DNA from: Rebecca billardiae RCC1528 | Taxonomy: Eukaryota; Protista; Haptophyta | DNA: 64,000 nt | Reading direction: 5' to 3' | Assembly (NCBI GenBank): GCA_965240325.2 | Contig: OZ251229.1 | Coordinates: 1,736,001-1,800,000, forward strand | Part shown: piece after piece, positions 9,001-37,563 of the stretch | Layout: every line of letters begins with the position of its first letter | How positions within the stretch are numbered: position 1 is the stretch's first letter | Notes under the pieces: generated by a model | The model's database searches: none | Told to the model about the DNA's origin: nothing | What the model saw: the letters and a program-made list of their open reading frames with translations, nothing else | Program-made: the position numbers and the translations under genes

Positions 9001-10000
9001 TGGCGGGGAGGGCGACGGTGGAGGCGGCGGCGACGGTCTCGGCGGCGGAGGCGGAGGCGACGGCGGCGGCGACGGCGAAGTGCTCGGCGGCGGCGACGGG
9101 CTGGGCGGCGGTGGCGGTGGCGACGGTGGCGGCGCCGGGCCGGGCGGCGGTGGGCTGCTGGGCGGCGGCGGCTGCGCCGGCAGTGGCGACGGCGACGGCG
9201 GAGGCGGCGGCGACGGGCTAGGTGGCGGTGGCGGAGGCGACGGCGGCGGCGACGGCGAAGTGCTCGGTGGTGGCGATGGCGAAGGCGGCGGTGGCGGTGG
9301 CGACGGTGGCGGCGACGGGCCGGGCGGCGGTGGGCTGCTCGGCGGCGGCGATGGCGGCGGCGGTGGCGGCGAGCTCGGTGGCGGGCTTGGAGGCGGCGGC
9401 GGCGGTGGACTTGGTGGCGGTGACGGTGGTGGTGGCGGCGGTGTACTCGGTGGCGGGGAGGGCGACGGTGGAGGCGGCGGCGACGGTCTCGGCGGCGGAG
9501 GCGGAGGCGACGGCGGCGGCGACGGCGAAGTGCTCGGCGGCGGCGACGGGCTGGGCGGCGGTGGCGGTGGCGACGGTGGCGGCGACGGGCCGGGCGGCGG
9601 TGGGCTGCTGGGCGGCGGCGGCTGCGCTGGCAGTGGCGACGGTGACGGCGGAGGCGGCGGCGACGGGCTAGGTGGCGGTGGCGGAGGCGACGGCGGCGGC
9701 GACGGCGAAGTGCTCGGTGGTGGCGATGGCGAAGGCGGCGGTGGCGGTGGTGACGGTGGCGGCGACGGGCCGGGCGGCGGTGGGCTGCTGGGCGGCGGGA
9801 ATGGCGGTGGCGGTGGCGGCGAGCTCGGCGGCAGGCCTGGCGGAGACGGCGGCGGCGAGCTCGGTGGCGGGCTTGGCGGCGGCGGCGGCGGCGAACTTGG
9901 TGGTGGTGACGGCGGTGGCGGCGGCGAAGAGCTCGGCGGCGGCGATGGCGGTGGCGGTGGCGGCGAGCTCGGTGGCGGCGACGGGCTGGGCGGCGGCGGT
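1..10000. repeat. Hierarchical coding tandem-repeat array: 36-bp, 141/78-bp, 180-bp and 387/450-bp units in successive blocks
   Basis: 36-bp unit at 1-~960; 141-bp unit (gcgaagcgtt at 1011 and 1152) with an optional 78-bp subunit to ~6350; 180-bp period at 6361/6541/6721; 387- and 450-bp higher-order units at ~8000-9700. All unit lengths are multiples of 3. Confidence 0.95.
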
Positions 10001-18700: not shown

Positions 18701-20393
18701 TCAATGATATCCATCTCGAGTAGTATAGCTACCGAACGACTCATTGGCGTGAAAACCCCATTTTCTGGCCTGTCCGGGCGGAAAATCCGGCTGCTCAGCT
18801 CCGCCCCGGACTGGACCCGGACAGCATACGTAGTATCTAGCCAGCTTGCTGCCCGCCCGCGCGTGCACCCCACACCGCTCGCGGTGTGTCCGCCAGTCGC
18901 GCCGCTGGCACTCCTCGCTGTGCATCCGCAGGAGCGCACGCGAGACGCGCGCGTACATTGGACAGGCCGGGCGCGCAAGGGACGTGTCAGCATCATCGTG
19001 CAAGGCCATACATCGGCACAGCGCGCGCACGGCGCTCGCGCGCCGCAGCGCCGCACCTGCAGTCTACCACCGCCTTGCAACGCCCGCACCGACGGCCGCC
19101 GCAGCCACCGCACGCGGCTCACGGGCGCGTGGGCGCGCGCAGCGGCACTTGCCCGCGTTCGACCGCGCATGGCAGTACGTGCTCCACCCACAGCCGCTGC
19201 ACAGCGCCCGAGTGCACGCCGCCAAACCGCGCGTCCGCGGCCAGCTCGTACCCCAGCGACAGCAGCTCCACAGCGCGAGCGCGCGCGGGTGCTGGGAAGA
19301 GGTGGTGGGTCTTGGGGCTCCACGGGCCGGCTGCGGCGACCACGGCCGCCGCGGCGCCGTGGTGCGGATCCATGGCGAGAGTGGAGTAGGCCAGCGCGAG
19401 GGGCGACGACTTGCCATCGGCGCTGAGGGCGTCGGTGTCGGTGAGCGCGCGCAGCTGCGCCACCGCCTCCGCCTCGCTCAGCAGCTCGACGTGGTGCAGG
19501 GCAGTGGGCCAGTGACACGCGCGCTCGAGCCAGGCAGAGAGCTCGGCATCAAACTCGCCACCCTCCATTCGAGTAGTGTCGCGTAACTTCTGCCGTTCAC
19601 CGAGATCGACCATGCCTTCCCCGCGCAGCGCCTGGGCCTTGCACAGCAGCTGCACCACCTGCAGCCGCTCAGCGGGCGTGTGGTCAGTGCGCTGCGCAGG
19701 TTGCATCCTGATCGCGAATGACAGCAGAGGCAACTGCGTGCGTGGGACAAGGGCGCTTGGGAGCTCGTAAAGCTGCGCAACGATATGCATGTCTGCACGC
19801 GCGCTGAGCAGCAGCTGCACGCACGGCGCGTGCAGCTCGCGCACCGCCTCGAAAAGCGGCGGCGGCATGCCTTCATCTCCGTCGATGCGGTTGACGTTTG
19901 CGCGCGCTGTGATCAGCAGCTGCACGCACTCGGCGTGGCCGAAGGTGCAGCACCCAGAGATGGCCCGAAATCCTTTCGAATCATGCCGGTCGACGCTCGC
20001 GCCTGCGTCGAGCAGGGCGCGCACGCACTCCGCATCGCCTTGCATGGACGCGACGTGGAGCGCTGTCCACGTGTTGCCGGTGATGGCATCCGGGTCAGCG
20101 TTCGCCCGGAGGAGGAGCTGCGCGCATACTGCATGATCGCCGGCGAGACATGCGCAATGCAACGCGTAGCCCTGAAGCTCCTGCTTGCCCTTGATGTGGA
20201 TTCTAGCGCCCGCCTCGAGGAGCAGCCGGGCGCACTCGGCCTGTCCGTTCCCGCATGCGCACATGAGAGCGGTGCCACCGCTTGCGTCGTGGCGGTCGAG
20301 ATCGCCGCCCAGTGCCAGGAGCGACTCGAGCTTGTGCACATCGCCAATTGCGCAAGCGCCCATCATGTCCCACGTCAGCTCCTCGGGAGTCAT
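18701..20393 (-). CDS. Ankyrin-repeat protein with C-terminal MYND zinc finger, interrupted by in-frame TGA at 19119-19121; intron 18918-19056
   Basis: Ankyrin repeats (GGTALMCACGNG, WTALHVASMQG). Beyond the TGA the frame continues AACGGCGGRRCGRCKAVVDC and, after splicing, SEECQRRDWRTHRERC, which matches MYND Cys/His spacing. Confidence 0.75.
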
Positions 20394-21469
20394 TGCCTCG
20401 GGGCAGAGCCGCCGCTGTGCACGGCGCGCGTCGCGGTCCTCGCGTAGCTTTTGGCGGGAGAATGATGGGCGGCCAAGGACTTTGGCGCCTTCGCGGCGCC
20501 CTCGCCTTGGTCACCAAATGACTGACGCGAGCAGAGCTGCCGGACAGGCATTTCCGGATGCCACACCGTGGAGCGGTACGGTGATACGTACTCATTCCAA
20601 GGGTAGTCGGAGGGTGAGCAACTCCGCTGGCGACAGCCGCGGAGGTCGGTCGGGCTCTGTTTGCCTCGGCGCCCGGTGCAGTAAGGTCTGGCGTTTGCCA
20701 CTGGCGACTGCACACGGCAACAGGGGCGTTTGCGCCCTGTTGTCGTGTGCACACTGGGGCGCAAAAGGGGTCACCCTCAGGGGGTTTCGCACTGCTGTTG
20801 CCGTGTGCACCGGCCCGCTGCACCGGCCCGCTGTGGCCGTGCACACGGCAACAGGGCGCAAACGGCCCTGTTGCCGTGTGCAGGCGTGCATGGCTTGCGA
20901 TGGCAGCCAGCCGTCAGCAGGGCGCCACGCCCACTGTTCGTTGGTAGGCTGGCCCGATGGCGTCGCGGAGCTCACGCGTACGGGGGAGGAGGGCATCGAC
21001 GAGGAGACGACCAAGGGCGAGAAGCAGCAGGGGGCACGCAGCACGGGGCTCGGAGCATGCCGCGAGCACGCGTGCCTCCACACCGTCGCACATCAACCTT
21101 GCTCGTAGCTGTGCGCTGTGCTGCCACTCATCTCACCATCGCCCATGCTACGGGCGCGGCCGGGTGGTGGGCATCTACCTGTCGGCGCAGCACTGGCACC
21201 GGTGGTCGCCAGACACTCCTCGACTTGCTCTGCGCGTCACAGCAAGGAGACGGCAGCGGCACAGCTGTGTGAGCTCGCAGATGAAGTGCTCCTCTGCTTT
21301 GCGAGGCTGAGAGGCTGAGCACGCGTGGCGAGCGCTGGCATTCCCCCGCATTCATGAGACCAACAGGTACATAGCCGTGCCCAGGAGCGCAGGACCAACC
21401 GCCGGGTGCTGCTTCAAACACCTGCGCCCCACTCTGCCGGCAGGCTGAGGGGCGCTCTACTCTATGCTG

Positions 21470-22900
21470 CACGCGGCAGCAGCAGCTGGGCCGTTGGGAT
21501 GGTCCTGCACGGATGACGGCGGTCGCCGCGGCTGACAGCTTGGTGTCACTGGTTCGAAGGGCCTGGACGACGGACGCGCCGAGCGTGGTGACGCTGCTCG
21601 ATGCGCCCACGGCACTGCCAAGCGCGCTGGAGCCGCTGCCTCGAGCACTACTGTGCCCGCGCCCAGCTTGGGCAGCAGCAGCTGCGCTCAACTCCGCGCC
21701 GCGTGCCGTGGCAGCAGCAGGGATGGTGCCACGGCGGCCGGCGGCGGTCGACGGAGCTGTCGGCTCGGCGGTGCACGCCCGAGGGGCCTGGGCGGTGGGC
21801 GCACCGAACGCGGTGCCGCTGCTCGCCTCGCCCATGGCGCTGGAGCCGCTGCCATCCGACGCTGCTGCGCCCGCGCCAAGCTTGCGCAGCAGCGGCTGCG
21901 CTCGACTCCGCGCCGCGTGGGGCGGCAGCACCAGGGATGGTGCTACGGCGGGCGACGACGGTCGCTAGAGCTGAAAGCTCGGCGGTGCACGCCCGAGGGG
22001 CCTGGGCGGTGGGCGCACCGAACGCGGTGCCGCTGCTCGCCTCGCCCATGGCGCTCGAGCCGCTGCCATCCGACGCTGCTGCGCCCGCGCCAAGCTTGGG
22101 CAGCAGCGGCTGCGCTCGACTCCGCGCAGAGTGCGGCGGCAGCAGCAGGGATGGTGCTACGGTGGGCGACGACGGTCGCTAGAGCTGAAAGCTCGGCGGT
22201 GTGCGCCTGAGGGGCCTGGGCGGTGGGCGCACCGAACGCGGTGCCGCTGCTCGCCTCGCCCATGGCGCTGGAGCCGCTGCCATCCGACGCTGCTGCACCC
22301 GCGCCAAGCTTGGGCAGCAGCGGCTGCGCTCGACTCCGCGCAGAGTGCGGCGGCAGCAGCAGGGATGGTGCCACGGCGGGCGGCGGCGGTCGACGGAGCT
22401 GTCGGCTCGGCGGTGCACGCCCGAGGGGCCTGGGCGCTGGACGCACCGAACGCGGTGCCGCTGCTCGCCTCGCCCATGGCGCTGGAGCCGCTGCCATCCG
22501 ACGCGGCTGCACCCGCGCCAAGCTTGCGCAGCAGCGGCTGCGCTCGACTCCGCGCCGCGTGGGGCGGCAGCAGCAGGGATGGTGCTACGGTGGGCGACGA
22601 CGCTAGAGCTGAAAGCTCGGCGGTGTGCGCCTGAGGGGCCTGGGCGGTGGGTGCATTGAGCGCGCTGACGCCTCTCGCCTCGCCCGGCGCGCTCGAGCCG
22701 CTGCCATCCGATGCTGCCGCGCCCGCGCCCTGTCGCGCCGAGTGCGGCTGCAGCATCAGGGATGGCGCCACGGCGGGCGGGCGGCGGTGCATGCAGCTAG
22801 CAGCTCGGTGCTGCACGCGCGAGGGGCCTGGGCGGCAGACGCGCGCAATGCAGTGACGCTGATGCACGCGTCAGGCGCGCTGGCCAGCCCCCGGAGCTGT
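21470..22900 (+). repeat. 214-bp tandem array, left arm of element C (~6-7 units)
   Basis: gggatgg recurs at 21720, 21934, 22148, 22362 and 22576. Confidence 0.9.
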
Positions 22901-23649
22901 TGCTACGACACTTCTTCTGTCCTGCTGCGAGCCGAGCCGCCAGCAGGTTCCGGGGCGGGCAATGCCGGTCAGCTCATATTCATAAGGCCGGCGGCGCATA
23001 CCAGTCGTAGCCCGGCAGGTAGGCGATGCAGAAGTTATCAGCAGCATCATGCATCGTCATCACTACATCAGCATCTGCCTAGACGAGTACGTAAGAACTC
23101 TTTAAATTATCCACGCGTACTACGGCACCGAGCATATATCTCGAATCATCGTCAATCTGCTCCGACTAGCCGTTCAGAGCGGTACTCCGACTACGACGAT
23201 GCATCAGCCAGCTCCGGGGCGGCGGCTGTCCGACACTCTGCCGTCATGTGCGTATATATATATAAGTGACTCTTACTCCACCTAGCGGTCTATCCGGATC
23301 GGTACCCTGGCGGCGGTGTTGTCGTCTGTCCGCCGTCACAGCCTGACTGCTCGCGTAGCTAGTCACTTATCAGTGATGTGATGGTCTCGTCGTCCGCGTC
23401 CGGCCGGACTGTCGCGACGACAAGTCGTGCTGGGCCTGGCGGCTCACAGTGTAAGTTAGTAGAAGCTAACTCATCAATGTAAGAGCATCAGTAGTGAGCA
23501 GCAGCAGTAGCAGCTCGACTGCTGGCGTCATCACCGTGCTACACTCCGGCGCGACACGGTCACGGTCAGCTGGTCAGCAGTCTATACTTATACGCCGGGA
23601 CCGTAGTACTGTAGTAGAGTACGTATGATACGTAGTTTTAACGACGACC

Positions 23650-26060
23650 GGTCGGCGCGCGTGCCAAGCAGCACTCAGCACCGCCCGACCACCGCCGCCG
23701 GCTTGGCCGTGGCACCTCCCTGCTGCTACCACCGCATGCGGCGCGAAGCCTCCGGAGCGCAGCTGCTGCCAGGCCTGCCAGCTGCAGCCGTGCAGCGGCG
23801 CCGGGGCACGGGCGCAGCGGCATCGGATGGCAGAGGCTCGAGCGCGCTACGGAACGAGGCGAGCGGCTACACCGCGCTCGGTGCGTCCAGCGCCCACGCC
23901 TCTCGGGTGGGCACTGCCAAGCTTTCAGCTGCTGCGGCCGCCCGCCGTGGCACCATCCCTGCTGCTGCTGCCGCACGCGGCGCGGAGTGGAGCGCTGCTG
24001 CTGCTGCCCTGGCCGGGCGCGGGCGCAGCAGCACTGGATGGCAGCGGCTCCAGCGCTATGGGCGAGGCGAGCAGCGGCACCGCGCTCGGTGCGTCCAGCG
24101 CCCAGGCCCCTCGGGCGTGCACCGCCGAGCTGCCGGCTGCAGCAACCACCGCCGCCCGCCGTGCCACCATCCCTGCTGCTGCTGCCGCACGCGGTGCGGA
24201 GTCGAGCGCAGCCGCTGCTGCCCAAGCTGGGCGCGGGCGCAGCAGCGTCGGATGGCAGCGGCTCGAGGCGCCATGGGCGAGGCGAGCAGCGGCACCGCGT
24301 TCGGTGCGCCCACCGCCCAGGCCCCTCGGGCGTGCGCTGCCGAGCCGACAGCTGCGTCGACCGCCGCCGCCCGCCGTGGCACCATCCCTGCTGCTGCCGC
24401 CGCACGCGGCGCGGAGTCAGGCGCGGCTGCTGCTGCCCAAGCTGGGCGCTGGTGCAGCAGCATCGGATGGCAGCGGCTCCAGCGCGCTGCGGGAGGCGAG
24501 CAGCGGCACCGCGCTCGGTGCGCCCACCGCCCAGGCCCCTCGGGCGTGCACCGCCGAGCTTTCAGCTGCGTCGACCGCCGCCACCCGCCGTGGCACCATC
24601 CCTGCTGCTGCCGCCGCACGCGGCGCGGAGTCAGGCGCGGCTACTGCTGCCCAAGCTGGGCGCTGGTGCAGCAGCATCGGATGGCAGCGGCTCGAGCGCG
24701 CTGCGGGAGGCCAGCGGGGACACCGCGCTCGGTGCGTCCAACGCCTAGGCCCCTCGGGCGCACACCGCCGAGCTTTCAGCTCCGTCGACCGCCGCCGCCC
24801 GCCGTGGCACCATCCCTGCTGCTGCCGCCGCACGCGGCGCGGAGTCGAGCGCAGCTGCTGCTGCCCAAGCTGGGCGCAAGCGCAGCAGCGTCGGATGGCA
24901 GGGCTCCAGCGCGCTGCGGGAGGCGAGCGGCGATGGCGCGCTCAGCGCGTCTGCAGCCCAGGCCCCTCGGGCGTGCGCCACCGAGCTGCCGGCTGCAGCA
25001 ACCGCCGCCGCCCACAGTGGCACCATTCCTGCTGCTGCTGCCGCACGCGGCGCGGAGTCGAGCGCCGCTGCTGCTGCTGCCCCAGCTGGGCGTGGGCGCA
25101 CCAGCACCGGATGGCAGCGGCTCGAGCGCCATGGGCGAGGCGAGCAGCGGCACCGCGCTCGGTGCGTCCAGCACCCACGCCCCTCGGGCGCACACCGCCG
25201 AGCTTTCAGCTCCAGCGACCCACGCCGCCCGCCCTGGCACCATCCCTGCTGCTGCCGCCGCACTCGGCGCGGAGTCGAGCGCAGCCGCTGCTGCCCAAGC
25301 TTGGCGCGTGCGCAGCAGCGTCGGATGGCAGCGGCTCGAGCGCCATGGGCGAGGCGAGCAGCGGCACCGCGCTCGGTGCGCCCACCGCCCAGGCCCCTCG
25401 GGCGCACACAGCCGAGTTTTCAGCTCCAGCAACCGCCGCCGCCCACCGTGGCACCATCCCTGCTGCTGCTGCCGCACGCGGCGCGGAGTCTAGCGCAGCC
25501 GCTGCTGCCCAAGCTGGGCGCGGGCGCAGCAGCGTCGGATGGCAGCGGCTCCAGCGCGCTGCGGGAGGCGAGCAGTGACACCGCGCTCGGTGCATCCAAT
25601 GCCCGGGCCCCTCGGGCGCGCACCGCCGAGCTGACAGCTGCGCCGACCCACGCCGCCCGCCGTGGCACCATCCCTGCTGCTGCAGCCAATGCGGCGCGGA
25701 GTCAAGTGCAGCTGCAGCTGGGCCCCAGCTGGGCGCGGGCACAGCAGCACCAGATGGCAGCGGCTCCAGCGCGCTGGGCAGTGCCGTGGTCGTGTGGAGC
25801 AACGTCACGGCGCTCGGCGCGTCCATCGACGAGGCCCCTCGAGCGAGCGACACCGAGCTGTCATCTGCGGCGAAAGCCGTCATCCGCCGCGGGACCATTC
25901 CAGCAGCTGCTGCCGCATGCAGTGCAGACTCGAGCGTGGCTGCCGCTGGTGTTGGCGGCCCGGATGGGCGCGGGTGCAGCATCATCAGGTGCCAGCGACC
26001 CCATCGCGGCGGGCGCGATGGGCCAGGTCGCTGCGTTTGGCGCGCCATTGCCCAGGCCGT
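23650..26060 (-). repeat. Inverted 214-bp tandem array, right arm of element C (~11 units)
   Basis: caccatccc recurs at about 214-bp spacing from 23951 to ~25666; it is the reverse complement of the left array unit. Confidence 0.9.
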
Positions 26061-27942
26061 TCAAGCGAGCACCACCGAGCTGTTAGTTGGAGCAACTGCT
26101 GCCGCCCGTCATTATACTGTACGTACTGCTGCTGCAGCATCAACAGCGCTTATACTGTACGTACTGCTGCTGCAGCATCAACAGCGCCGCTGTTACCAGC
26201 AGCGCTGCGCTCGTGTATCCGAAGCAGCGCCGCATTGATGGTCCTGCGGTCTGAGTAGGGGAGTATGCCAGTAGCTCGCATGCACCTGGAGTGCAGTCCA
26301 TGCCTGTACTGCCTCGCCGAGTACTACTAGAGTAGTAGGACCTCATGTGCTCACGCAGCTGTGCCGCTGCCGTCTCCTTGCTGTGACGCGCAGAGCAAGT
26401 CGAGGAGTGTCTGGCGACCACCGGTGCCAGTGCTGCGCCGACAGGTAGATGCCCACCACCGGGCCGCGCCCGTAGCATGGGCGATGGTGAGATGAGTGGC
26501 AGCACAGCGCACAGCTACGAGCAAGGTTGATGTGCGACGGTATGGAGGCACGCGTGCTCGCTGCATGCTCCGAGCCCCGTGCTGCGTGCCCCCTGCTGCT
26601 TCTCGCCCTTGGTCGTCTCCTCGTCGATGCCCTCCTCCCCCGTACGCGTGAGCTCCGCGACGCCATCGGGCCAGCCTACCAACGAACAGTGGGCGTGGCG
26701 CCCTTGCTGACGGCTGGCTGCCATCGCAAGCCATGCACGCCTGCACACGGCAACAGGGCCGTTTGCGCCCTGTTGCCGTGTGCACGGCCACAGCGGGCCG
26801 GTGCACACGGCAACAGCAGTGCGAAACCCCCTGAGGGTGACCCCTTTTGCGCCCCAGTGTGCACACGACAACAGGGCGCAAACGCCCCTGTTGCCGTGTG
26901 CAGTCGCCAGTGGCAAACGCCAAACCTGGCTGCCCGGTGCGAGCGGAGCGGAGCGAGTACTATCAGCGGCGGAGGGCGCTGAGGCCGCGCACGGCGTGAG
27001 GCGCGGCGTCGGCCGAGTCGGTCTGCAGAGGATGCGCGGCGCTCGGCCCGCTGCGCAGCAGCAGTGTGCCTCACTTTGCCCCGAGCGCCGTCCTCCGCGT
27101 CGCCTCCTTCCCGCCTTGGAGCAGCACGCATGTGCGCGCCGCCACCTCGAAGGCGGCACGGGCTTGCTCAGACGACCGCGCGCGCGTGGCGCGCGACTCG
27201 GTCGACTGCGCGCGCGCGCTGCCGCGGTGCAAGGTAGCGCCACCCCATACGCGCGCCGTGCCCGCGCGTGCCTTTGCTTACGGCCATCTCATGAGCGTAG
27301 TGCTCGTTTGTCTGCTTGCTCTCACGAATGGTTCGCTGTGCCTCACGCCAGCGCTCGTCGGTCGATCAGCGAGGTGTTGAGTGACATTGGATACCCATGA
27401 CGAAGGCCTAGCCGTGTGTATCCCTTCTCAGCACGAATGCAAGCGGACGCTATGGCTCCGCATCGATGGTACCAACACTCACGCCGCTGTCTTTTCCAGC
27501 TTCACGTCACTCAACACTAGTCGGATGCGCAAGCAGCATTAGACATGTGTGTGAGCTCGCACTCACGTCCGCGCACACGCTCTCGCAAGGCCACGGCGCG
27601 CGTATGAGGTGGCGCTACCTTGCACCGCGGCAGCGCGCGCGCGCAGTCGACCGAGTCGCGCGCCACGCGCGCGCGGTCGTCTGAGCAAGCCCGTGCCGCC
27701 TTCGAGGTGGCGGCGCGCACATGCGTGCTGCTCCAAGGCGGGAAGGAGGCGACGCGGAGGACGGCGCTCGGGGCAAAGTGAGGCACACTGCTGCTGCGCA
27801 GCGGGCCGAGCGCCGCGCATCCTCTGCAGACCGACTCGGCCGACGCCGCGCCTCACGCCGTGCGCGGCCTCAGCGCCCTCCGCCGCTGATAGTACTCGCT
27901 CCGCTCCGCTCGCACCGGGCGCCGAGGCAAACAGAGCCCGAC

Positions 27943-30167
27943 CAAGGGAGTCAAGGGTGCCCGCGCCAAGGGAGTCAAGGGTGCCCGCGCCCCAGTGGCG
28001 CGCTCGGCGGATGTTGGGATACACCTTTTTGCCCGCGGCCCTGCGGCGGCGGCGGCGATGGCGTGCTCCGCTGGCGGGGCGAGCGCACGGGGCACGGCGC
28101 TGCGGGCGCGGATGTGCCCGCGAAGCCGGCGCGTGCGGACGGGCTGTTGCGGGAGAGCATCTGGCGCCCTCCTGCGCCGCGCGACTTGCGCCACGCCTCT
28201 TTCGCCTCGGCTCAGAGCAGCGCGCACGCACGCGCCGCCTCAAGGCCAGCCTTGCCGCGCCGCAGCCGACCGCGCGCGCGCCGTGCGCGGCGTGGTCGGG
28301 AAGGAACGGGCGCTGCTGCCGGGCGAGATGGCGACGTCATAGGCGCACGCCATGCCGCCCCGCCACGCCTTGACGAGAGTGTCGTCGGTCCGTTTGCACG
28401 CCTTTTCGACTTGTCACAAATGGTGTGCACTGCCTCGCGGTCGTGACCGTTGTCGGGACGATCATTGAGACACAGAACAGTGCCAGACGGGCACGCGGGC
28501 TACTCTTACATGAATGTTCATCACCGCGTGGTCATGTAGAAGTGCTGGGTGCGACGCTTTCCTCGCGCTGATGCTCTTTCATCATCTTCTTCGAGCTCAG
28601 GTCTGGCTTCAGGCACGGCAAGAAATCAGCACTCGTCAACAGCTGTGCGGATCCGTTCTCGTGCTCTTTCGCGGCGCCGCGGGGCGGCATGGCGTGCGCC
28701 CATGACGTCGCCATCTCGCCCGGCAGCAGCGCCCGTTCCTTCCCGACCACGCCGCGCACGGCGCGCGCGCGGTCGGCTGCGGCGCGGCAAGGCTGGCCTT
28801 GAGGCGGCGCGTGCGTGCGCGCTGCTCTGAGCCGAGGCGAAAGAGGCGTGGCGCAAGTCGCGCGGCGCAGGAGGGCGCCCGATACTCTCCCGCAACAGCC
28901 CGTCCGCACGCGCCGGCTTCGCGGGCACATCCGCGCCCGCAGCGCCGTGCCCCGTGCGCTCGCCCCGCCAGCGGAGCACGCCATCGCCGCCGCCGCCGCA
29001 GGGCGCCGGGCAAAAATCTGTATCCCAACATCCGCCGAGCGCGCCACTGGGGCGCGGGCACCCTTGACTCCCTTGCCCGCGCCCCAGTGGCGCGCTCGGC
29101 GGATGTTGGGATACACCTTTTTGCCCGCGGCCCTGCGGCGGCGGCGGCGATGGCGTGCTCCGCTGGCGGGGCGAGCGCACGGGGCACGGCGCTGCGGGCG
29201 CGGATGTGCCCGCGAAGCCGGCGCGTGCGGACGGGCTGTTGCGGGAGAGCATCTGGCGCCCTCCTGCGCCGCGCGACTTGCGCCACGCCTCTTTCGCCTC
29301 GGCTCAGAGCAGCGCGCACGCACGCGCCGCCTCAAGGCCAGCCTTGCCGCGCCGCAGCCGACCGCGCGCGCGCCGTGCGCGGCGTGGTCGGGAAGGAACG
29401 GGCGCTGCTGCCGGGCGAGATGGCGACGTCATAGGCGCACGCCGTGCCGCCCCGCCACGCCTTGACGAGAGTGTCGTCGGTCCGTTTGCACGCCTTTTCG
29501 ACTTGTCACAAATGGTGTGCACTGCCTCGCGGTCGTGACCGTTGTCGGGACGATCATTGAGACACAGAACAGTGCCAGACGGGCACGCGGGCTACTCTTA
29601 CATGAATGTTCATCACCGCGTGGTCATGTAGAAGTGCTGGGTGCGACGCTTTCCTCGCGCTGATGCTCTTTCATCATCTTCTTCGAGCTCAGGTCTGGCT
29701 TCAGGCACGGCAAGAAATCAGCACTCGTCAACAGCTGTGCGGATCCGTTCTCGTGCTCTTTCGCGGCGCCGCGGGGCGGCATGGCGTGCGCCCATGACGT
29801 CGCCATCTCGCCCGGCAGCAGCGCCCGTTCCTTCCCGACCACGCCGCGCACGGCGCGCGCGCGGTCGGCTGCGGCGCGGCAAGGCTGGCCTTGAGGCGGC
29901 GCGTGCGTGCGCGCTGCTCTGAGCCGAGGCGAAAGAGGCGTGGCGCAAGTCGCGCGGCGCAGGAGGGCGCCAGATGCTCTCCCGCAACAGCCCGTCCGCA
30001 CGCGCCGGCTTCGCGGGCACATCCGCGCCCGCAGCGCCGTGCCCCGTGCGCTCGCCCCGCCAGCGGAGCACGCCATCGCCGCCGCCGCCGCAGGGCCGCG
30101 GGCAAAAAGGTGTATCCCAACATCCGCCGAGCGCGCCACTGGGGCGCGGGCACCCTTGACTCCCTTG
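27943..30167. mobile_element. Foldback element B (1109 bp net; ~400-bp TIRs; 7-bp TSD GCCCGAC), inserted in the right TIR of A
   Basis: Ends CAAGGGAGTCAAGGGTG...CACCCTTGACTCCCTTG; GCCCGAC at 27936-27942 and 30168-30174. Confidence 0.9.
27967..29075. mobile_element. Foldback element B' (1109 bp, near-identical to B; 7-bp TSD CCCGCGC), inserted 24 bp into B's own left TIR
   Basis: Same termini as B; CCCGCGC at 27960-27966 and 29076-29082; arms 27967-~28366 and ~28678-29075 are inverted. Confidence 0.9.
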
Positions 30168-30824
30168 GCCCGACCGACCTCCGCGGCTGTCGCCAGCGGA
30201 GTTGCTCACCCTTACTACCCTTGCTCATTCTATGATTTAACGACACAGGTAGGACGACGCGGGTCTCCTGATTCGTCGGCGGCAGTGCCCGATCGTCGAC
30301 ACGAAGTCGGCGTTGGTGGTGAGCAGAGCATAGCCTGCACCGCGATCGTAAAGCTTGAGCGCGGCCTTGAGCTGCTGAAGCGCGATCCACCTGCGCTGCG
30401 CGGCTCGCATGGCCCTGCTGTGCCCCGAGCGAGGGCGATGGTGCAGGTCCGGATGTCAGCTGGCAGTCTCACCTCCGGACTACTATCGCGTCATCCGAAA
30501 TATGTCGCCGCAGTCTCATTGTCAGCAGCGGATGATCGATCATGATGATGACGACGAATATGGATGACGACAGATATGCTGCGCGCATGATGATGATCGA
30601 ATATTTCTGACTACTGACGACGAAATCGCACGACCGGAGACGGCGACGACGAGTCCGGTCACTCCGGAGTCGACGACGTCGACGGACGACCACTACAGTA
30701 CGACGACCGTCCCGTCCCCGCCCCCGGCTTGCCAGCGTCATATCCGCCGGCGTCGTCTACGCCATCAGGCCCGCGCCGTCGTCAATCACCGAGCGGCGTA
30801 TCAAAACCACGGCGCCGGCTCGGA

Positions 30825-32345
30825 TCAATGCAGCACAGAGAGCCAGGGCGCATGCGCGAGCTCCGGCGCGAGGTCGCGCAGCGATGCGCACAGCTTGGGC
30901 GCGAGCGCGCGCACGCGCTCCTCGGTCGATTCGGCGAGGGCGGCGCTCGGCTGCGCGAGCCACGCGCACATCAGCCGCGCAGCGACGGGCAGCAGCTCGT
31001 GCGGCGGGGAGAGGTCGGCTGCGTCCTCGGCGAACTGCGCGCACGCCTCCACCGCGCCAAGCACGGCGCGGTGCATGCCGAGCAGCGAGGCGTCGTCGAG
31101 GGCGGTGGCCCACGAGTCCTCCGAGCCCGCGCGCGCGCCCGCGTTTCCGGCCGCGCCGCTCTGGCCGACGGCCTCGTCGTCGTCGGAAGCGTCAGCATTC
31201 ATCTCCGAGAGAGCGCACTCGAGGGCCGTGCAGCACGCGAGCAGCGTGCGCAGCTGCTCCGGCGCGAGCGGCTCGAGCCGCGCCGGCTGCGCGTGCAGCA
31301 GCATCGCCAGCTCGACGCCCGCCAGCTGCACGAACAGGTGCGCAAACGAGGCGCGCTCGGCGGCGCGCGCTCCGGGCGCGTCTGCGGTCGGGCGCCGCGC
31401 GGTCCCCGTGCCGGATGCGTGGTGGTGCGCGGCGTCGGTCGGCTCGGCGGCGGGCGCGGGGGCGTCGGCGCGTCGCAGCCACGCGCTCGCGTCCGCGCCG
31501 AGCGCCCACCCGCCGCCAAAGTGCTCGAGCATCAGCGCGCCCAGCTGAAGCGCCTCCATGCGCCGAGCCCGAGGTAGCCGGCTGCCCAGCACTTGGGCGA
31601 GCGCACGCCGCACGCTCGCGTGCCACTCGCGGGCGGCGGCGGGCGCGAGGTGCTCGGCGAATGCGTCGAGCCAGACGGTCAGCGTCGCGAGCGTCGAGAA
31701 GCGCGCCTCGTCCCCCGGTGACGCCGAGTCCGCCGCTGCGGCGAGAGCGCACGTGACACGCTGCGCGCCTGCGGTTGCGCCGCCCGTGAGTGAGACCGGG
31801 CGCTGCGCGGCGCACGCCAGGGCGGCGAGCAGCGCGAGTGCGCGGCGTGCACCTCCGCCGTTCGTGCCCGCCGTGACGAGCCCCGCGACGTGCTCGACCG
31901 CCGTCGTGTCGCGCAGGACCGCCTCCGCCACGTGGGGCGCGTGCGCGAGCGCGCACGCGACAGCGCGCGCGTTCTCAGCCTCCTCCTCGTCCTCTGTGCC
32001 GAGAGAGGTGGCGGCGAGGGCGGCGATCTCGGCGGCGCGTGGCACAGCAAAGCCCGGCTCGGACAGCGCGAGCGCGAGCAGCCGGAGGGACAACGGTCGG
32101 AGCGCGTGCGACGGCCCGGGCGTGTCGGCCGGCGCGGTGCGCAGCATGCGCTCCAGATACGCGAGGCCGACTTGGTCGATGATGCGCCTGACGAAATCGA
32201 CGGGCTGCTCGGCGTGCGGCGCCGCGCGTGCCGCGAGCACGAGGCCGACGAAGCGCTCCTCATCGCCGCCGGAGGAGCACAGCCGAAAGGCCTGCTCCAG
32301 GGAGGCGTGCGGGACCATGCTGCTGTCGTCCGCGGGTGCCGCCAT
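30825..32345 (-). CDS. Neurochondrin-like ARM-repeat protein
   Basis: DEERFVGLVLAAR and RIIDQVGLAYLERMLRT resemble the neurochondrin N-terminus; helical Ala/Leu-rich ORF. Confidence 0.65.
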   Translation of the reverse strand: MAAPADDSSMVPHASLEQAFRLCSSGGDEERFVGLVLAARAAPHAEQPVDFVRRIIDQVGLAYLERMLRTAPADTPGPSHALRPLSLRLLALALSEPGFAVPRAAEIAALAATSLGTEDEEEAENARAVACALAHAPHVAEAVLRDTTAVEHVAGLVTAGTNGGGARRALALLAALACAAQRPVSLTGGATAGAQRVTCALAAAADSASPGDEARFSTLATLTVWLDAFAEHLAPAAAREWHASVRRALAQVLGSRLPRARRMEALQLGALMLEHFGGGWALGADASAWLRRADAPAPAAEPTDAAHHHASGTGTARRPTADAPGARAAERASFAHLFVQLAGVELAMLLHAQPARLEPLAPEQLRTLLACCTALECALSEMNADASDDDEAVGQSGAAGNAGARAGSEDSWATALDDASLLGMHRAVLGAVEACAQFAEDAADLSPPHELLPVAARLMCAWLAQPSAALAESTEERVRALAPKLCASLRDLAPELAHAPWLSVLH

Positions 32346-32453
32346 GCTGCCACTGCGCACCCGTGGTCGGAGCAAAAGAACGTTCGGCAGCGTTCAAACT
32401 GTCTTGGCGCCCAGCTTCATCAGCTCCGGCCGGGCGCGCCGCCTGCCGTGCGC

Positions 32454-34727
32454 ATGGGGCCGGCGCGCGACGATGACGCGCTGATGCCCGCGACGATTCG
32501 CGGTCCGGACGGCACGTCGTACACACGCGATGTCTACTTGGGCAGGGTGCGTCCGCGACCCGCATCCCCTCCTGCCCGTCGAGCCGTCCCTGCCGCTGTC
32601 CCTTGCGCGTGGCACGCCACACGTAGGCGCGCTCACTCTGCGGCGCGCTCGCGACCATCGCCGCCCGCAGGGAGGGTTCGCGCACGTGTACGCAGTCAAG
32701 TCAGACCGTGGAGATGCATTCGCGTGCAAGGTGGTGCGCAAGGACGCGCTGACAAAGCCAAAGCTGCGGCTGAAGGTGCCCTTGCGCCGCATGCTCGCGC
32801 GCGCGCGCGTGCGCAGCAGCGCACTCTCACTCGCTGTGTGCGCCGTGCTCACCCCTCCTCCCCGACGACGACGCGCGCGGCGCCCGCCTCGCAGCTGGCG
32901 AGCGAGATCGAGATCCACCGCTCGCTCGACCACCCGAACATCGTGCGCTTCGTCGACAGCGCCGAGGACGACGCGCGCGTGTACCTGCTGCTCGAGCTGT
33001 GTGCGGGCCGCAGCCTCCATGAGCTCGTGGTGCTCAAGAAGCGGCTGAGCGAGGCGGAGGCGGGGAGCGTGCTGCTGCAGGTGGTGCGCGCGACGAGCTA
33101 CCTGCACGCTCGCAACGTGCTCCACCGCGACATCAAGCTGTCCAACCTCTTCGTGCACCACGGCGCCGTCAAGCTCGGCGACTTTGGGCTGTCCGCGCGG
33201 CTACTGAGCGCCTCGGAGCGGCGGGAGACGGTGTGCGGCACGCCCAACTACGTCGCGCCGGAGGTGATCGCGAGGAGTCGCGGCCTGGCGGCGGAGGAGG
33301 AGGGCGCGGCGCGTCCGGGGCCCGACGCGCGCCCGCCCACGCCCCGCGGCCACTCCTTCCCCGCCGACGTCTGGTCGATCGGCGTCGTCCTATACGCCCT
33401 CGTCACCGGCCGGGCGCCGTTTGACGGCCGTGGTGACGTGAAGCGCACGTACGCTCGGATCAGGGAGGGCGGCGTGGTGTTCCCGCGCGGGCTCGAGCTC
33501 TCGGCGGAGGTGCGCGGGCTGATCGTCGCGATGCTCGACCCCGCGCCCGAGCGCCGACCCTCGCTCGACGCGGTCGCCACCCACCCCTTTGTGGAGCGAG
33601 CGCTCGGGCCGGCGCCGCCAACGCGCACGCCCGGGCCGCGCGCGTCACCGACCGCGCCTCCCGGGGCTGCGGGCGTTGAGCAACCTCGGGCGTGCGTGGC
33701 GCCGACCGCGCCTCCCGGGGCTGCGGCCGCTGAGCAGCCTCGGGCGTGCGTGGCGCCGGCGGAGGGGTGCGTGGGCGGTGCGGGTGAGTGGACAAGCGCG
33801 CGACGAGCGCTCCGCCCGCTGGCCGAGCCCGTGGCACAGCAGCACCCCGGCGCGCGCGAGCGCACTCCGCCGGTGCGCCTGAGCGTGGCGCCGGCCTTCT
33901 GCGCCCACGCCGACGCGGGCGCGTGCGTGGCGCGCTGGGTGGACATGCGCTCGCGCTTCGGCGTGGGGTACGAGCTGCTCGGCGGCTCGGTCGGGGCGTG
34001 GTTCAACGACGGCACGCGCATGGTGCGCTCGGCGGACGGCGCTCTGATCCAATACCGCGAGCGCGCCAGGCCTGACGGCTGCGCGCCTGCCCACGGCGCC
34101 GACACTTCCGGCGAGCAGCCCGGCGGGTCCGCTGCGCTGTCGCAGCAGCAGCTGCTGCAGCAGCAGCAGCAGCAGCACGCGCAGGGCTGCGAGCGCGCGC
34201 TCGAGTTCGACGCGTACGCGCCGCCGCCCGCGCGGCTCGCGAAGAAGTGGGCTCTGCTGCATCACTTTGCAGCACTCCTGCAGCGGCGGCCGCACGACAC
34301 GGTGCCGGCTTCCTTCGGCGCGGGCTGCGACGGCGGCCGCACGCCGCGCGCAGAGTTTGCACACGTGCGCCGGAGCCTCTGCACTGCCGCGGGCGGCGGC
34401 TGCACCGTCTTCAGGCTGAGCCGGCGCTGGCTGCAGCTGCTCTTTGAGGACGGGATGGAGGTGCTGCTCCCGCCACCGCCGCTGCAGGCGCAGGGCGAGC
34501 CCGCCGTGTACGTGCCACCCTCAGCCGAGGCATGCTGCGCGCCTTCGGCCCCGAGGGCGGAGTCGGTGGCCGCCCTCAGCGCGCGGCCAGCGGCGCGTGT
34601 CACAGCGGTGCTCGACGCGCTCGGCGTGCACGCCAGCCAGCGCCCGCCCGCCGCGTTCCTGGCGCAGGCAGCGGATGGAGTGTCATTGTCGTCGTCATCA
34701 TCAGCACTGTTAGTGTTACTGCGATGA
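32454..34727 (+). CDS. PLK: Polo-like kinase; introns 32547-32670 and 32776-32894
   Basis: Spliced LGR|GGFAHVY, ACKVV, HRDIKLSN, DFG, CGTPNYVAPE; polo-box VARWVDMRSRFGVGYEL..SVGAWFNDGT. Confidence 0.9.
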   Translation: MGPARDDDALMPATIRGPDGTSYTRDVYLGRVRPRPASPPARRAVPAAVPCAWHATRRRAHSAARSRPSPPAGRVRARVRSQVRPWRCIRVQGGAQGRADKAKAAAEGALAPHARARARAQQRTLTRCVRRAHPSSPTTTRAAPASQLASEIEIHRSLDHPNIVRFVDSAEDDARVYLLLELCAGRSLHELVVLKKRLSEAEAGSVLLQVVRATSYLHARNVLHRDIKLSNLFVHHGAVKLGDFGLSARLLSASERRETVCGTPNYVAPEVIARSRGLAAEEEGAARPGPDARPPTPRGHSFPADVWSIGVVLYALVTGRAPFDGRGDVKRTYARIREGGVVFPRGLELSAEVRGLIVAMLDPAPERRPSLDAVATHPFVERALGPAPPTRTPGPRASPTAPPGAAGVEQPRACVAPTAPPGAAAAEQPRACVAPAEGCVGGAGEWTSARRALRPLAEPVAQQHPGARERTPPVRLSVAPAFCAHADAGACVARWVDMRSRFGVGYELLGGSVGAWFNDGTRMVRSADGALIQYRERARPDGCAPAHGADTSGEQPGGSAALSQQQLLQQQQQQHAQGCERALEFDAYAPPPARLAKKWALLHHFAALLQRRPHDTVPASFGAGCDGGRTPRAEFAHVRRSLCTAAGGGCTVFRLSRRWLQLLFEDGMEVLLPPPPLQAQGEPAVYVPPSAEACCAPSAPRAESVAALSARPAARVTAVLDALGVHASQRPPAAFLAQAADGVSLSSSSSALLVLLR

Positions 34728-34936
34728 TTGCTGACGCTGCCGCGCCTAGCCCGTTGGCTATAATTATGGTCACTTACGACCGTAGGCTTAGCGTCTGTAA
34801 CGACAGGCAGACCCGAAAACTTAAGTCTTAAGCTGTTAGTAGTAGTAGTATGGCCGCCAGCTAATACTACTATATATAAGGCGGTTCATTCAGTCGATCT
34901 TAATTCTTATCGGACACGGTCACGCATCACTATTCA

Positions 34937-35481
34937 CTATGCTAACAACGTGCGCGAGTCCTCACTCTCGTCAGTCTCACGCACCGCCGGAACCTCTCCG
35001 TGGCCCAGCGCCGCTCCTGCCTGGTACTCTCCCGTGCCGTCACCATACTCGTCCTGCACCTCCTCCTCGCCGCACGTGTGCAGCCCGCCATCCGGCCCAT
35101 CCGCGTCCACAAACGCGCCCAGCACGGAAGACAGCCGATAGCAATGGCGCAGCCGCACGCGACGGCATGGCGGTGCGTGCGCGCGAGCTGGAGTAGGCGC
35201 TCACGTGCGAACAGCTCGGACGTCCAGCTGCACACGTGCGGTGGCAGTGTCGCCGGCAAGGCGGGCTCGTGTCCGCGCGCGCGTGCGCGCTCGCGCAGCG
35301 CGTGCTCATAGCTCAACCGGCGAGCGGCCGCCCGGCGCACCGCGGAAGAGGCGCGAGGTGGCGTTGGCGGCCAGTAGAGTGGGTAGCTTGAACGCACTCG
35401 CGATAATGCGCTCGATGACCTCGGGCGGCATGTCCGCCAGGCACAGCACCGCAGGTGCGCGCGGTGCGTGCTCCTTCGGAG
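34937..35481 (-). pseudogene. Frameshifted F-box plus RCC1-repeat-like gene remnant abutting element D
   Basis: LADMPPEVIERII (F-box-like) and GGLHTCG...AALGHGE (RCC1-like) lie in different frames; the 5' end is cut by element D. Confidence 0.5.
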
Positions 35482-36590
35482 CAAGGGTGTCCAGGGTCCG
35501 CAACAGCCAGTGCGCAGCGCGGCAGAGGCTGTGACATCGCGAGGTCGCCGCTCGCCAGTGGGACTCGCCCGCCCGCCGCCCTGCACGGCGGCGGGGCCGC
35601 TCGCGCCGTGCGCTCCTGCGGCCGTCGGGTCGGGCTGCGTAGGCGGCGCGCGGCTTGGGCCGTCGCTGAGCCACCCAGCGCCCCTCTCTGCGCCGCGCGC
35701 CTTCCTCGTCCTCGCCTCCTCCGCGCCTTGGAGCAGCACGCACACGCGCGCCGCCGCACAAAGGCAGCCCAGGCGCTCGTGTGCAAGCGTGCGCGCACGC
35801 AGCGCGACGGGCTTGACTCGGGGCTCGCGCCGCTGCGGGGGCATGCAGCACCATCACATGCGCGCGCGACGCCACCTCGAGCCTGCGCATCGCTGTGACC
35901 GTCACGTGCCAAATGCTCACACGTCCTCGTGTTGAAGTAGGCCCAATCTGACCAGAACCTGCCATGCGTCAGGACGACTTCTTAGGCAAGACACGATGAC
36001 AGCTACGTACGCGGCGCTTCTCAGCAAGCGCGGAGACCACAAGAGAAGCGCACGCAAGCATGACCGTCTCCGCATCGATCGCGTCGACGCACTCAAGGCC
36101 CGTTGTGGAAGCTTCCGTCGCACGTGTGATAATGCCAAGTCAGACCATTTTGTAACGTGCATCAGCGTGCACTGACGGTCAAACGCGCAGGCTCGAGGTG
36201 GCGTCGCGCGCGCATGTGATGGTGCTGCATGCCCCCGCAGCGGCGCGAGCCCCGAGTCAAGCCCGTCGCGCTGCGTGCGCGCACGCTTGCACACGAGCGC
36301 CTGGGCTGCCTTTGTGCGGCGGCGCGCGTGTGCGTGCTGCTCCAAGGCGCGGAGGAGGCGAGGACGAGGAAGGCGCGCGGCGCAGAGAGGGGCGCTGGGT
36401 GGCTCAGCGACGGCCCAAGCCGCGCGCCGCCTACGCAGCCCGACCCGACGGCCGCAGGAGCGCACGGCGCGAGCGGCCCCGCCGCCGTGCAGGGCGGCGG
36501 GCGGGCGAGTGCCACTGGCGAGCGGCGACCTGCCTCTTCCCCAGCCCTGCCGCGCTGCGCACTGGCTGTTGCGGACCCTGGACACCCTTG
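35482..36590. mobile_element. Foldback element D (1109 bp; ~410-bp TIRs; degenerate 7-bp TSD TTCGGAG/TTCAGAT)
   Basis: Ends CAAGGGTGTCCAGGGT...ACCCTGGACACCCTTG; 35482-~35890 is the inverse of ~36185-36590; shares CCTTGGAGCAGCACGCA with element A. Confidence 0.88.
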
Positions 36591-36625
36591 TTCAGATGGC
36601 GAGGCGGCGAATCAGGCACGCAGCA

Positions 36626-37417
36626 ATGGCGGCCGGAGCGGGCCTCGTGCTGATGATGCTGGCAGCTTGTCCCCTCGCGCTATCCTCTCGTCAGCTTGGG
36701 CGCGTGCTCAAGCCGGCGCGTGTGCTCGCTCCACCGCGCCGCGTGCTGGCTTCGGGACCAGGAGCGGCAGCGCTCGGGCAGGACCTCGGCGAGCTCTTCG
36801 AGCTGTACGCGCCGCCGGACGGACCGACGGACGTGAGGCTTCAGCCGGGTGTGGCCCCGCGGCCCCTCGGGCAGCGCAAGCCGCGCGGCGAGGTGCACCG
36901 GGACGGCGATTGGCACCGATCGGTGCACATCTGGCTCGTGAGCGCCGAGCCCGCAGCGCCGCCCGCCTTGCTCATGCAGCGTCGCTCCGCGCACAAGGAC
37001 ACGTTCCCGAACCGTTGGGACGTGAGCGCGGCCGGGCACGTGACTGCCGGTGACACCTCGCTCGAGACCGCGACCAAGGAGCTGCACGAGGAGCTCGGCC
37101 TCGACATGCCGGCGGACGCGCTCGAGCGCGCGCTGTGGGTCACGCTCCCGGCGTGCGCCCGCGGCGAGACGCAGGGCCACGGCGAGTTTGTGTGCAATGA
37201 ATTCCAGGACCTGTATGTGCTGCGCGCGCCCGAGGCGGTGGCGCGCGCACCGGACGCGCTCGCGCTCGGCGCCGACGAGGTGTCCGACGTGCGCCTCTTC
37301 CCGCTCGAGACGGTTCTGCGCGCGTGGGAGCAGGGCGACCCGGATTTCGTCCCGCGCGCCCAACACTACCGGTCCGAAATCGGCCGTGCCGTGGACGTTC
37401 TCCTGCGCGCTGCATGA
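36626..37417 (+). CDS. Nudix hydrolase (IDI-1/NUDX3/YfcD-like) with N-terminal targeting peptide
   Basis: VHRDGDWHRSVHIWL, QRRSAHKDTFPNRWDVSAAGHV, ETATKELHEELGL (Nudix box). A hydrophobic then basic leader suggests bipartite plastid targeting (inference). Confidence 0.85.
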   Translation: MAAGAGLVLMMLAACPLALSSRQLGRVLKPARVLAPPRRVLASGPGAAALGQDLGELFELYAPPDGPTDVRLQPGVAPRPLGQRKPRGEVHRDGDWHRSVHIWLVSAEPAAPPALLMQRRSAHKDTFPNRWDVSAAGHVTAGDTSLETATKELHEELGLDMPADALERALWVTLPACARGETQGHGEFVCNEFQDLYVLRAPEAVARAPDALALGADEVSDVRLFPLETVLRAWEQGDPDFVPRAQHYRSEIGRAVDVLLRAA

Positions 37418-37563
37418 TGAGACTGAACGTAGTCTCGTCATGAGTCTACTGCACGGTCATGCGCATGTGACCCGTGTGGCACGTATGCTGACGATGATGC
37501 CAGTCGTCGTAGTTCATCGTGCATATAGCGTAGTATCATCGTCGCACAGCTACGGCTTCGTCG

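Follow-up and report, generated by a model that had tools for sequence, protein, structure and literature searches.

A nest of four non-coding DNA transposons with long terminal inverted repeats in an intergenic spacer of the haptophyte Rebecca billardiae

Rebecca billardiae RCC1528 belongs to the Haptophyta, and we describe here a nest of transposons in a 64,000-nucleotide stretch of its genome assembly (GCA_965240325.2, contig OZ251229.1, forward-strand positions 1,736,001 to 1,800,000). This whole stretch is called the window, and its positions are used throughout. Positions 20591-30230 were found to be dense in inverted repeats with a repeat finder, and repeat finding, sequence reading and scripted boundaries together parse them exactly into four non-coding DNA transposons with long terminal inverted repeats (TIRs), here named A, C, B and B'. 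All four elements start with CA and end with TG, and each is flanked by a perfect target-site duplication (TSD) of 7 bp, different from those of the others. C and B lie within A, and B' lies within B. The four-element nest is confirmed as real in the sequence as assembled. The region is very probably a stack of non-autonomous cut-and-paste transposons, moved in trans, that arose by successive insertion into an intergenic spacer of ~800 bp.

Boundaries of the nest

The segments of the nest, in order along the window, are as follows.

20591-20597: left TSD copy of A, CTCATTC, read from the sequence
20598-30223: A as a whole, inserts included, with TSD CTCATTC at 20591-20597 and 30224-30230
20598-20678, + strand: outer 81 bp of the left TIR of A, beginning CAAGGGTAGT; the final 7 bp (20672-20678, CCCGGTG) are the target of C
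20679-26932: element C, 6254 bp, non-coding, with ends CAGTAAGG.../...CCTGGCTG and TSD CCCGGTG at 20672-20678 and 26933-26939
26933-26939: right TSD copy of C, CCCGGTG
26940-27942: body of A, made up of what is left of the left arm (ending at ~27268), a loop of 315 bp, and the right arm (27584-27942)
27936-27942: target of B, GCCCGAC, the final 7 bp of the body segment of A
27943-30167: B as a whole, B' included, with TSD GCCCGAC at 27936-27942 and 30168-30174
27943-27966, + strand: first 24 bp of B; the final 7 bp (27960-27966, CCCGCGC) are the target of B'
27967-29075, + strand: element B', 1109 bp, intact, with 397-bp TIRs, co-oriented with B; TSD CCCGCGC at 27960-27966 and 29076-29082
29076-29082: right TSD copy of B', CCCGCGC
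29083-30167, + strand: remainder of B (B positions 25-1109)
30168-30174: right TSD copy of B, GCCCGAC
30175-30223, - strand: outer 49 bp of the right TIR of A
30224-30230: right TSD copy of A, CTCATTC

Each inner element interrupts a TIR of its host. The insertion point of C lies inside the left TIR of A, 81 bp from the left end of that element, the target of B lies inside the right TIR of A at 49-56 bp from the right end, and B' sits 24 bp inside the left end of B. The inserts C, B and B' were removed in silico, each with one copy of its TSD. Emptied in this way, A is 1133 bp long with TIRs that match at 398/402 positions, and B is 1109 bp long with TIRs that match at 395/397; B' is also 1109 bp long, and its TIRs match at 390/397. 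The alignments of the host TIRs run without gaps across every excision junction, and among the internal evidence this speaks most strongly for insertion as the cause of each break. B and B' match at 1102/1109 positions (99.4%, seven differences) and have the same orientation, with identical loop starts. The 24-nt terminus of B occurs exactly four times in the 64 kb, against 0 expected, and a subterminal 28-mer of C occurs exactly twice, the two copies being inverted to each other.

These results bear on an earlier note on this DNA, which had been made from the letters alone. The note had described a nest of four elements with CA...TG ends and perfect 7-bp TSDs, and its coordinates proved to be off by only a base or two. 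Its distances between the inserts and the host ends were reproduced, as was its statement that removal of the inserts restores the host TIRs, which holds for both A and B with no gaps. It had also proposed a recently active, non-autonomous system, and this agrees with the four non-autonomous elements, their 7-bp TSDs and their young appearance. The nest looks young because the TSDs are perfect, the arms are 98-99.5% identical, and B and B' are near-twins at 99.4%.

Anatomy of the elements and of a solitary relative

A, B and B' are hairpins in which arms of ~400 bp (74-77% G+C) enclose a loop of 309-333 bp (56-58% G+C). The DNA of B' folds in prediction into a single stem of ~400 bp at -718 kcal/mol. 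A relative, here named D, was found in the same window.

35482-36590: element D, un-nested, 5 kb from the nest, 1109 bp long, ends CAAGGGTGTCCAGGG, arms of ~400 bp

D has exactly the length of B and B' despite an identity of 53% to B. Over their whole lengths A, B and D are 53-57% identical in pairwise comparison, and what they have in common is length and geometry, the motif at their ends and, within the arms, a few conserved blocks. The end motif consists in A and B of CAAGGG followed, ~10 bases on, by AAGGGT, and in D the second box reads CAGGGT; all three thus have a pair of AGGG boxes at their ends, spaced by about one helical turn. The 7-bp flanks of D are degraded (TTCGGAG and TTCAGAT), and because they differ at two positions D is probably older. 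D adjoins the gene of a NUDIX protein, just upstream. In the diverged arms of A, B and D, the blocks GGAGCAGCACGCA...GCGCGCCGCC and GACCGCGCGCGCG are conserved at equal distances from the ends (e.g. 27080-27140 and 35720-35760); they are not obviously coding, and could be candidate binding sites or a promoter. The stack of B and B' (27943-30167) places identical left ends 24 bp apart and right ends 1092 bp apart. Non-cognate ends in such a stack could be brought together by a transposase, making the stack a substrate for alternative transposition.

Element C has TIRs of its own and, inside them, two mirrored tandem arrays.

20679-21274, + strand: left TIR of C, ~600 bp, in which the 15-nt motif CACACGGCAACAGGG occurs five times, its orientation alternating, and which also has a duplication of 13 bp (20806-20833)
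21624-22729, + strand: left array of C, 5.2 copies of a 214-bp unit
23804-25779, - strand: right array of C, 9.2 copies of the 214-bp unit of the left array, inverted relative to it and 87-90% complementary
26349-26932, - strand: right TIR of C, with inverted repeats of 99% and 96% (repeat finder)

The centre of C, between the arrays, is about one kilobase of unique sequence. The ends of C read CAGTAAGG and CAGCCAGG, with a start of CAG... and not CAAGGG. Beyond TSD length and the CA/TG ends, the likeness between C and A comes down to one box of 14 nt that lies about equally far from the end in both, and 56/2000 shuffles score equally. The 13-bp duplication at 20806-20833 in the left TIR is present as a single copy in the right TIR, and a perfect 38-bp tandem duplication occurs in the unique right part of C (26112-26187). 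These are small asymmetries that would postdate the formation of the arms. Ten open reading frames (ORFs) of C, with lengths of 198-622 aa and all but one >200 aa, gave no match in Pfam; they are uninformative by themselves because GC-rich DNA leaves all frames open.

Origin of the nest, its transposase and the choice of target sites

The containment of the elements implies at least four insertions, each with a 7-bp staggered cut. A would have come first, landing at CTCATTC, followed by C into its left arm and B into its right arm, and B' would have entered B either here or before B moved. It should be noted that containment gives the target sequence (A-type for C and B, B-type for B') and not the place of the event, and that several elements could have travelled together as one composite. 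Since none of the four elements encodes a protein, their movement must be driven in trans, presumably by a transposase that cuts with a 7-bp stagger and recognises ends starting with CA. By analogy, this transposase is most likely P-like, because 7-bp TSDs together with long TIRs in the style of the Drosophila element Galileo occur in the P superfamily.

Several observations pull in the other direction, on the nest itself, on the transposase or on the choice of target sites. A single public run (X1, Logan contigs) covers part of the stretch; it is patchy, with a third of the words of the stretch in short contigs and several bins at zero depth. Among the X1 contig pieces listed none bridges a junction of the locus, and for none of the four insertions did the X1 contigs show an empty site. 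The kinship of C with A and B appears weak. None of the TSDs (CTCATTC, CCCGGTG, GCCCGAC, CCCGCGC) matches the Galileo target consensus GTAGTAC, which is a trait of Drosophila Galileo and not of the whole P superfamily. No transposase was linked to these ends by the window ORFs, by a protein search with an ORF of the B' arm or by a metagenome pattern scan. Lastly, the nested events number three and were chosen post hoc, and their insertion points lie at non-homologous TIR positions (18-24, 50-56 and 75-81), so that there is no single hot spot.

The searches behind the negative result on the transposase covered proteins, domains and end sequences. Pfam tests of the ten ORFs of C and of ten neighbouring ORFs revealed no transposase, which bears out the earlier note in its remark that none is visible in the window. 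The protein search with a 180-aa inward frame of the B' arm gave no match. The metagenome scan with the pattern CAAGGG-N4-5-AAGGGTG-N8-9-CNNTGGCG returned 35 loci, about the chance number. These were rejected as chance matches: none has an inverted partner in its contig, and the best have 11-24 mismatches/40, the one with 11 being a simple repeat. Two of the contigs have 'human gut metagenome' in their names and were taken as bacterial chance matches. No further or autonomous copies were found by the protein and metagenome searches made.

An artefact of assembly from palindromic chimeric reads, or duplication or recombination in place of transposition, would dispense with the insertions altogether. 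Long perfect inverted repeats are error-prone in assembly, and X1 gives no read-level support for the junctions. Such an origin is nevertheless most improbable in view of the four different perfect 7-bp direct repeats, which stand exactly at the CA/TG ends, and of the host TIR, which is restored exactly each time; moreover, the differences between the arms and between the B copies are scattered, unlike those of collapsed or chimeric repeats. Tandem duplication was rejected as the origin of the B/B' pair, because it gives no account of the additional 24-bp tip of B that is present at 27943-27966. For this pair it could also be proposed that a single element reinserted by local hopping or into the sister chromatid, with no homing across the family. 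B and B' are 99.4% identical and co-oriented, their left ends are 24 bp apart, and self-insertion of P-derived constructs into their own copy is documented (PMC4744444). We regard this as somewhat doubtful, given the seven differences between the two and the greater divergence of the arms of B' (390/397) than of those of B (395/397), with which an independent donor remains compatible; the inserts hosted by A would need another explanation.

The assignment of the transposase is less firm than the nest itself. The P superfamily is defined by a transposase that combines a DNA-binding domain of the THAP type with a catalytic RNase H domain of the P type, and the P element has a TSD of 8 bp. hAT elements have 8-bp TSDs and ends that fit YARNG, and the Foldback (FB) elements of Drosophila have 9-bp TSDs. 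Galileo, of the P superfamily, has long TIRs and 7-bp TSDs (PMC2775673), and Mutator-like elements (MULEs) are recognised by TSDs of 8-11 bp, with TIRs of 100-500 bp in TIR-MULEs (PMC3903597). The nest agrees with Galileo in its four perfect 7-bp TSDs and also in its long TIRs, which measure 397-402 bp in A, B and B' and ~600 bp, with mirrored 214-bp arrays in addition, in C. An 8-bp TSD of the hAT type is not seen, as lengthening them to 8 bp would spoil either the repeat or the way in which the ends mirror each other, and the TSDs likewise fall short of the Mutator-like range. [quoted passage not shown] TSD length is the single feature by which superfamilies other than P would be excluded. 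A transposase from outside the P superfamily, whether hAT-like, Mutator-like or of an undescribed family that makes 7-bp TSDs, comes close to an even chance: the CAAGG of A, B, B' and D fits YARNG, long TIRs are a usual trait of TIR-MULEs, and no THAP or P-type protein is linked to the elements. Against it stand the uniform 7-bp TSDs, shorter than those of both hAT elements and MULEs, and the ends of C (CAGTA and CAGCC), which break YARNG. The earlier note had assigned the system to the P/Galileo type; TSD length and long TIRs agree with this assignment, and the defining transposase and GTAGTAC were not found. The Galileo pattern seen here amounts to a likeness, short of membership.

The inner insertions lie 24, 56 and 81 bp from the ends of hosts of ~1.1 kb, which under uniform insertion gives a Fisher combined p = 0.022 (n=3). 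Targeting of the ends is only a hint and not a result, because the nest was picked out for being striking. The TSDs have no clear common motif beyond CCCG, in a background of 70% G+C. The clustering would most plausibly reflect two effects jointly, namely tolerated insertion into inert DNA of a compact genome and some attraction to TIR ends, by which an incoming complex may be drawn to ends that are bound by transposase or structurally unusual (cruciform-prone). In the case of B' into B, a local hop out of a sister copy or of one nearby may also have contributed. A stronger version, in which bound protein or a cruciform junction attracts the transposase to the outermost ~100 bp of the TIRs of relatives, and the family homes into kin as a safe haven, seems unlikely. 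It is nearly an even prospect that there is no targeting at all: selection in a gene-dense genome would clear most insertions and leave survivors in harmless stretches, where they pile up neutrally, and closeness to the ends would be chance. The original spacer was indeed short, the end statistic is modest and post hoc with non-homologous sites, and transposable elements nested where insertion is tolerated are a familiar sight (PMC2775673, PMC5172404). Selection at the level of the host leaves unexplained, however, a bias of position within an inert 1.1-kb element, and a contig from X1 also speaks against pure chance. This contig, of 393 nt, comes from another locus and carries an A-like copy without C, with 5 differences/246 nt (placed at 26939-27184, with joints at 30174 and 30167/30223). 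It lacks ~30 nt of the A-like TIR and joins a B-like right end, with no spacer between them, to an A-like left end, as would be expected had an element inserted into the final 7 bp of a TIR. For the claim of the earlier note that the elements target the ends of their own relatives there is no more than a hint: the three inserts are indeed within 81 bp of host ends (n=3, chosen post hoc), B and B' are close kin and A is akin to them, and C has in common with A only TSD length, the CA/TG ends and the 14-nt box.

Should nesting directed at ends prove to be the rule across the genome, this would offer a clear example from nature of a cut-and-paste family that keeps down its harm to a compact genome through insertion into its own kin, and it would give a handle on how transposases choose their targets. 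Homing, if true, would also mean that nests put compatible ends side by side as substrates for alternative transposition and rearrangement. End stacks of the B/B' type are the kind of substrate behind breakage and inversions in maize Ac/Ds and in Drosophila P and Galileo.

Known systems and genomic setting

Nesting as such has precedent in MITEs (PMC5172404), P{lacW} (PMC4744444) and Galileo (PMC2775673). Rice and maize MITEs form multimers, with frequent self-insertion in some families (Jiang and Wessler 2001, as summarised in PMC5172404), and the likeness to the present nest lies in non-autonomous TIR elements inserted in each other. Those MITEs are short Tourist and Stowaway elements with TA or TAA targets, as opposed to hairpins of 1.1-6.3 kb with 7-bp TSDs and near-end insertions here. 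Galileo, with Kepler and Newton in Drosophila, is similar in its 7-bp TSD, its TIRs of hundreds of bp, its nested transposable elements and the predominance of short non-coding copies of ~1-1.5 kb (PMC2775673, PMC3573991). Galileo copies at inversion breakpoints carry other nested transposable elements (PMC2775673), and some subfamilies have tandem repeats of ~210 bp within their TIRs, which recall the 214-bp arrays of C (PMC3573991). The differences are that the GTAGTAC target is absent here, that the host is a GC-rich alga, that no transposase is linked here, and that A, B and D keep a fixed geometry of ~1.1 kb with arms only ~55% identical.

FB elements differ from the nest in their 9-bp TSD, against 7 bp here, and the arms of A, B and B' are non-repetitive. 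P constructs differ in that they belong to an experimental system whose transposase is known and whose TSD is 8 bp long. FB and the Mutator/foldback element Tm1 of root-knot nematodes (PMC3169594) resemble the nest in mirrored tandem-repeat arms, as in C, and in hairpin form. For P{lacW}, three self-insertions were mapped beside 35 unique-site matches and one in a transposon copy; entry of a P-derived element into its own resident copy is documented in this way, and no preference for TIR tips is documented in that study (PMC4744444). No paper on foldback elements in haptophytes was found in the searchable literature, nor was the group found described there for haptophyte-type algae; the locus records four recent insertions cleanly and in a form that can be dated.

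The nest lies between an ankyrin-repeat gene, whose ATG is 198 bp to its left, and a neurochondrin-like gene, whose end is 595 bp to its right. Through the nest the original spacer of ~800 bp has grown to 10.4 kb. For the ankyrin neighbour there was no exact record in the protein collection, the best homologue being 41% identical, so that this genome is probably absent from the collection, and no second assembly of the locus was reached. An Rfam scan of 19000-37500 gave no family at threshold. Farther right follow genes for a Polo-like kinase and then for the NUDIX protein, and the ten neighbouring ORFs carry ordinary cellular domains or none (Pfam). G+C content is 65-80% throughout the window. 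It is ~80% in positions 1-10500, where GC skew is strong and constant (+0.4 to +0.5) and very long open frames occur, e.g. 1019-10531 with 3170 aa.

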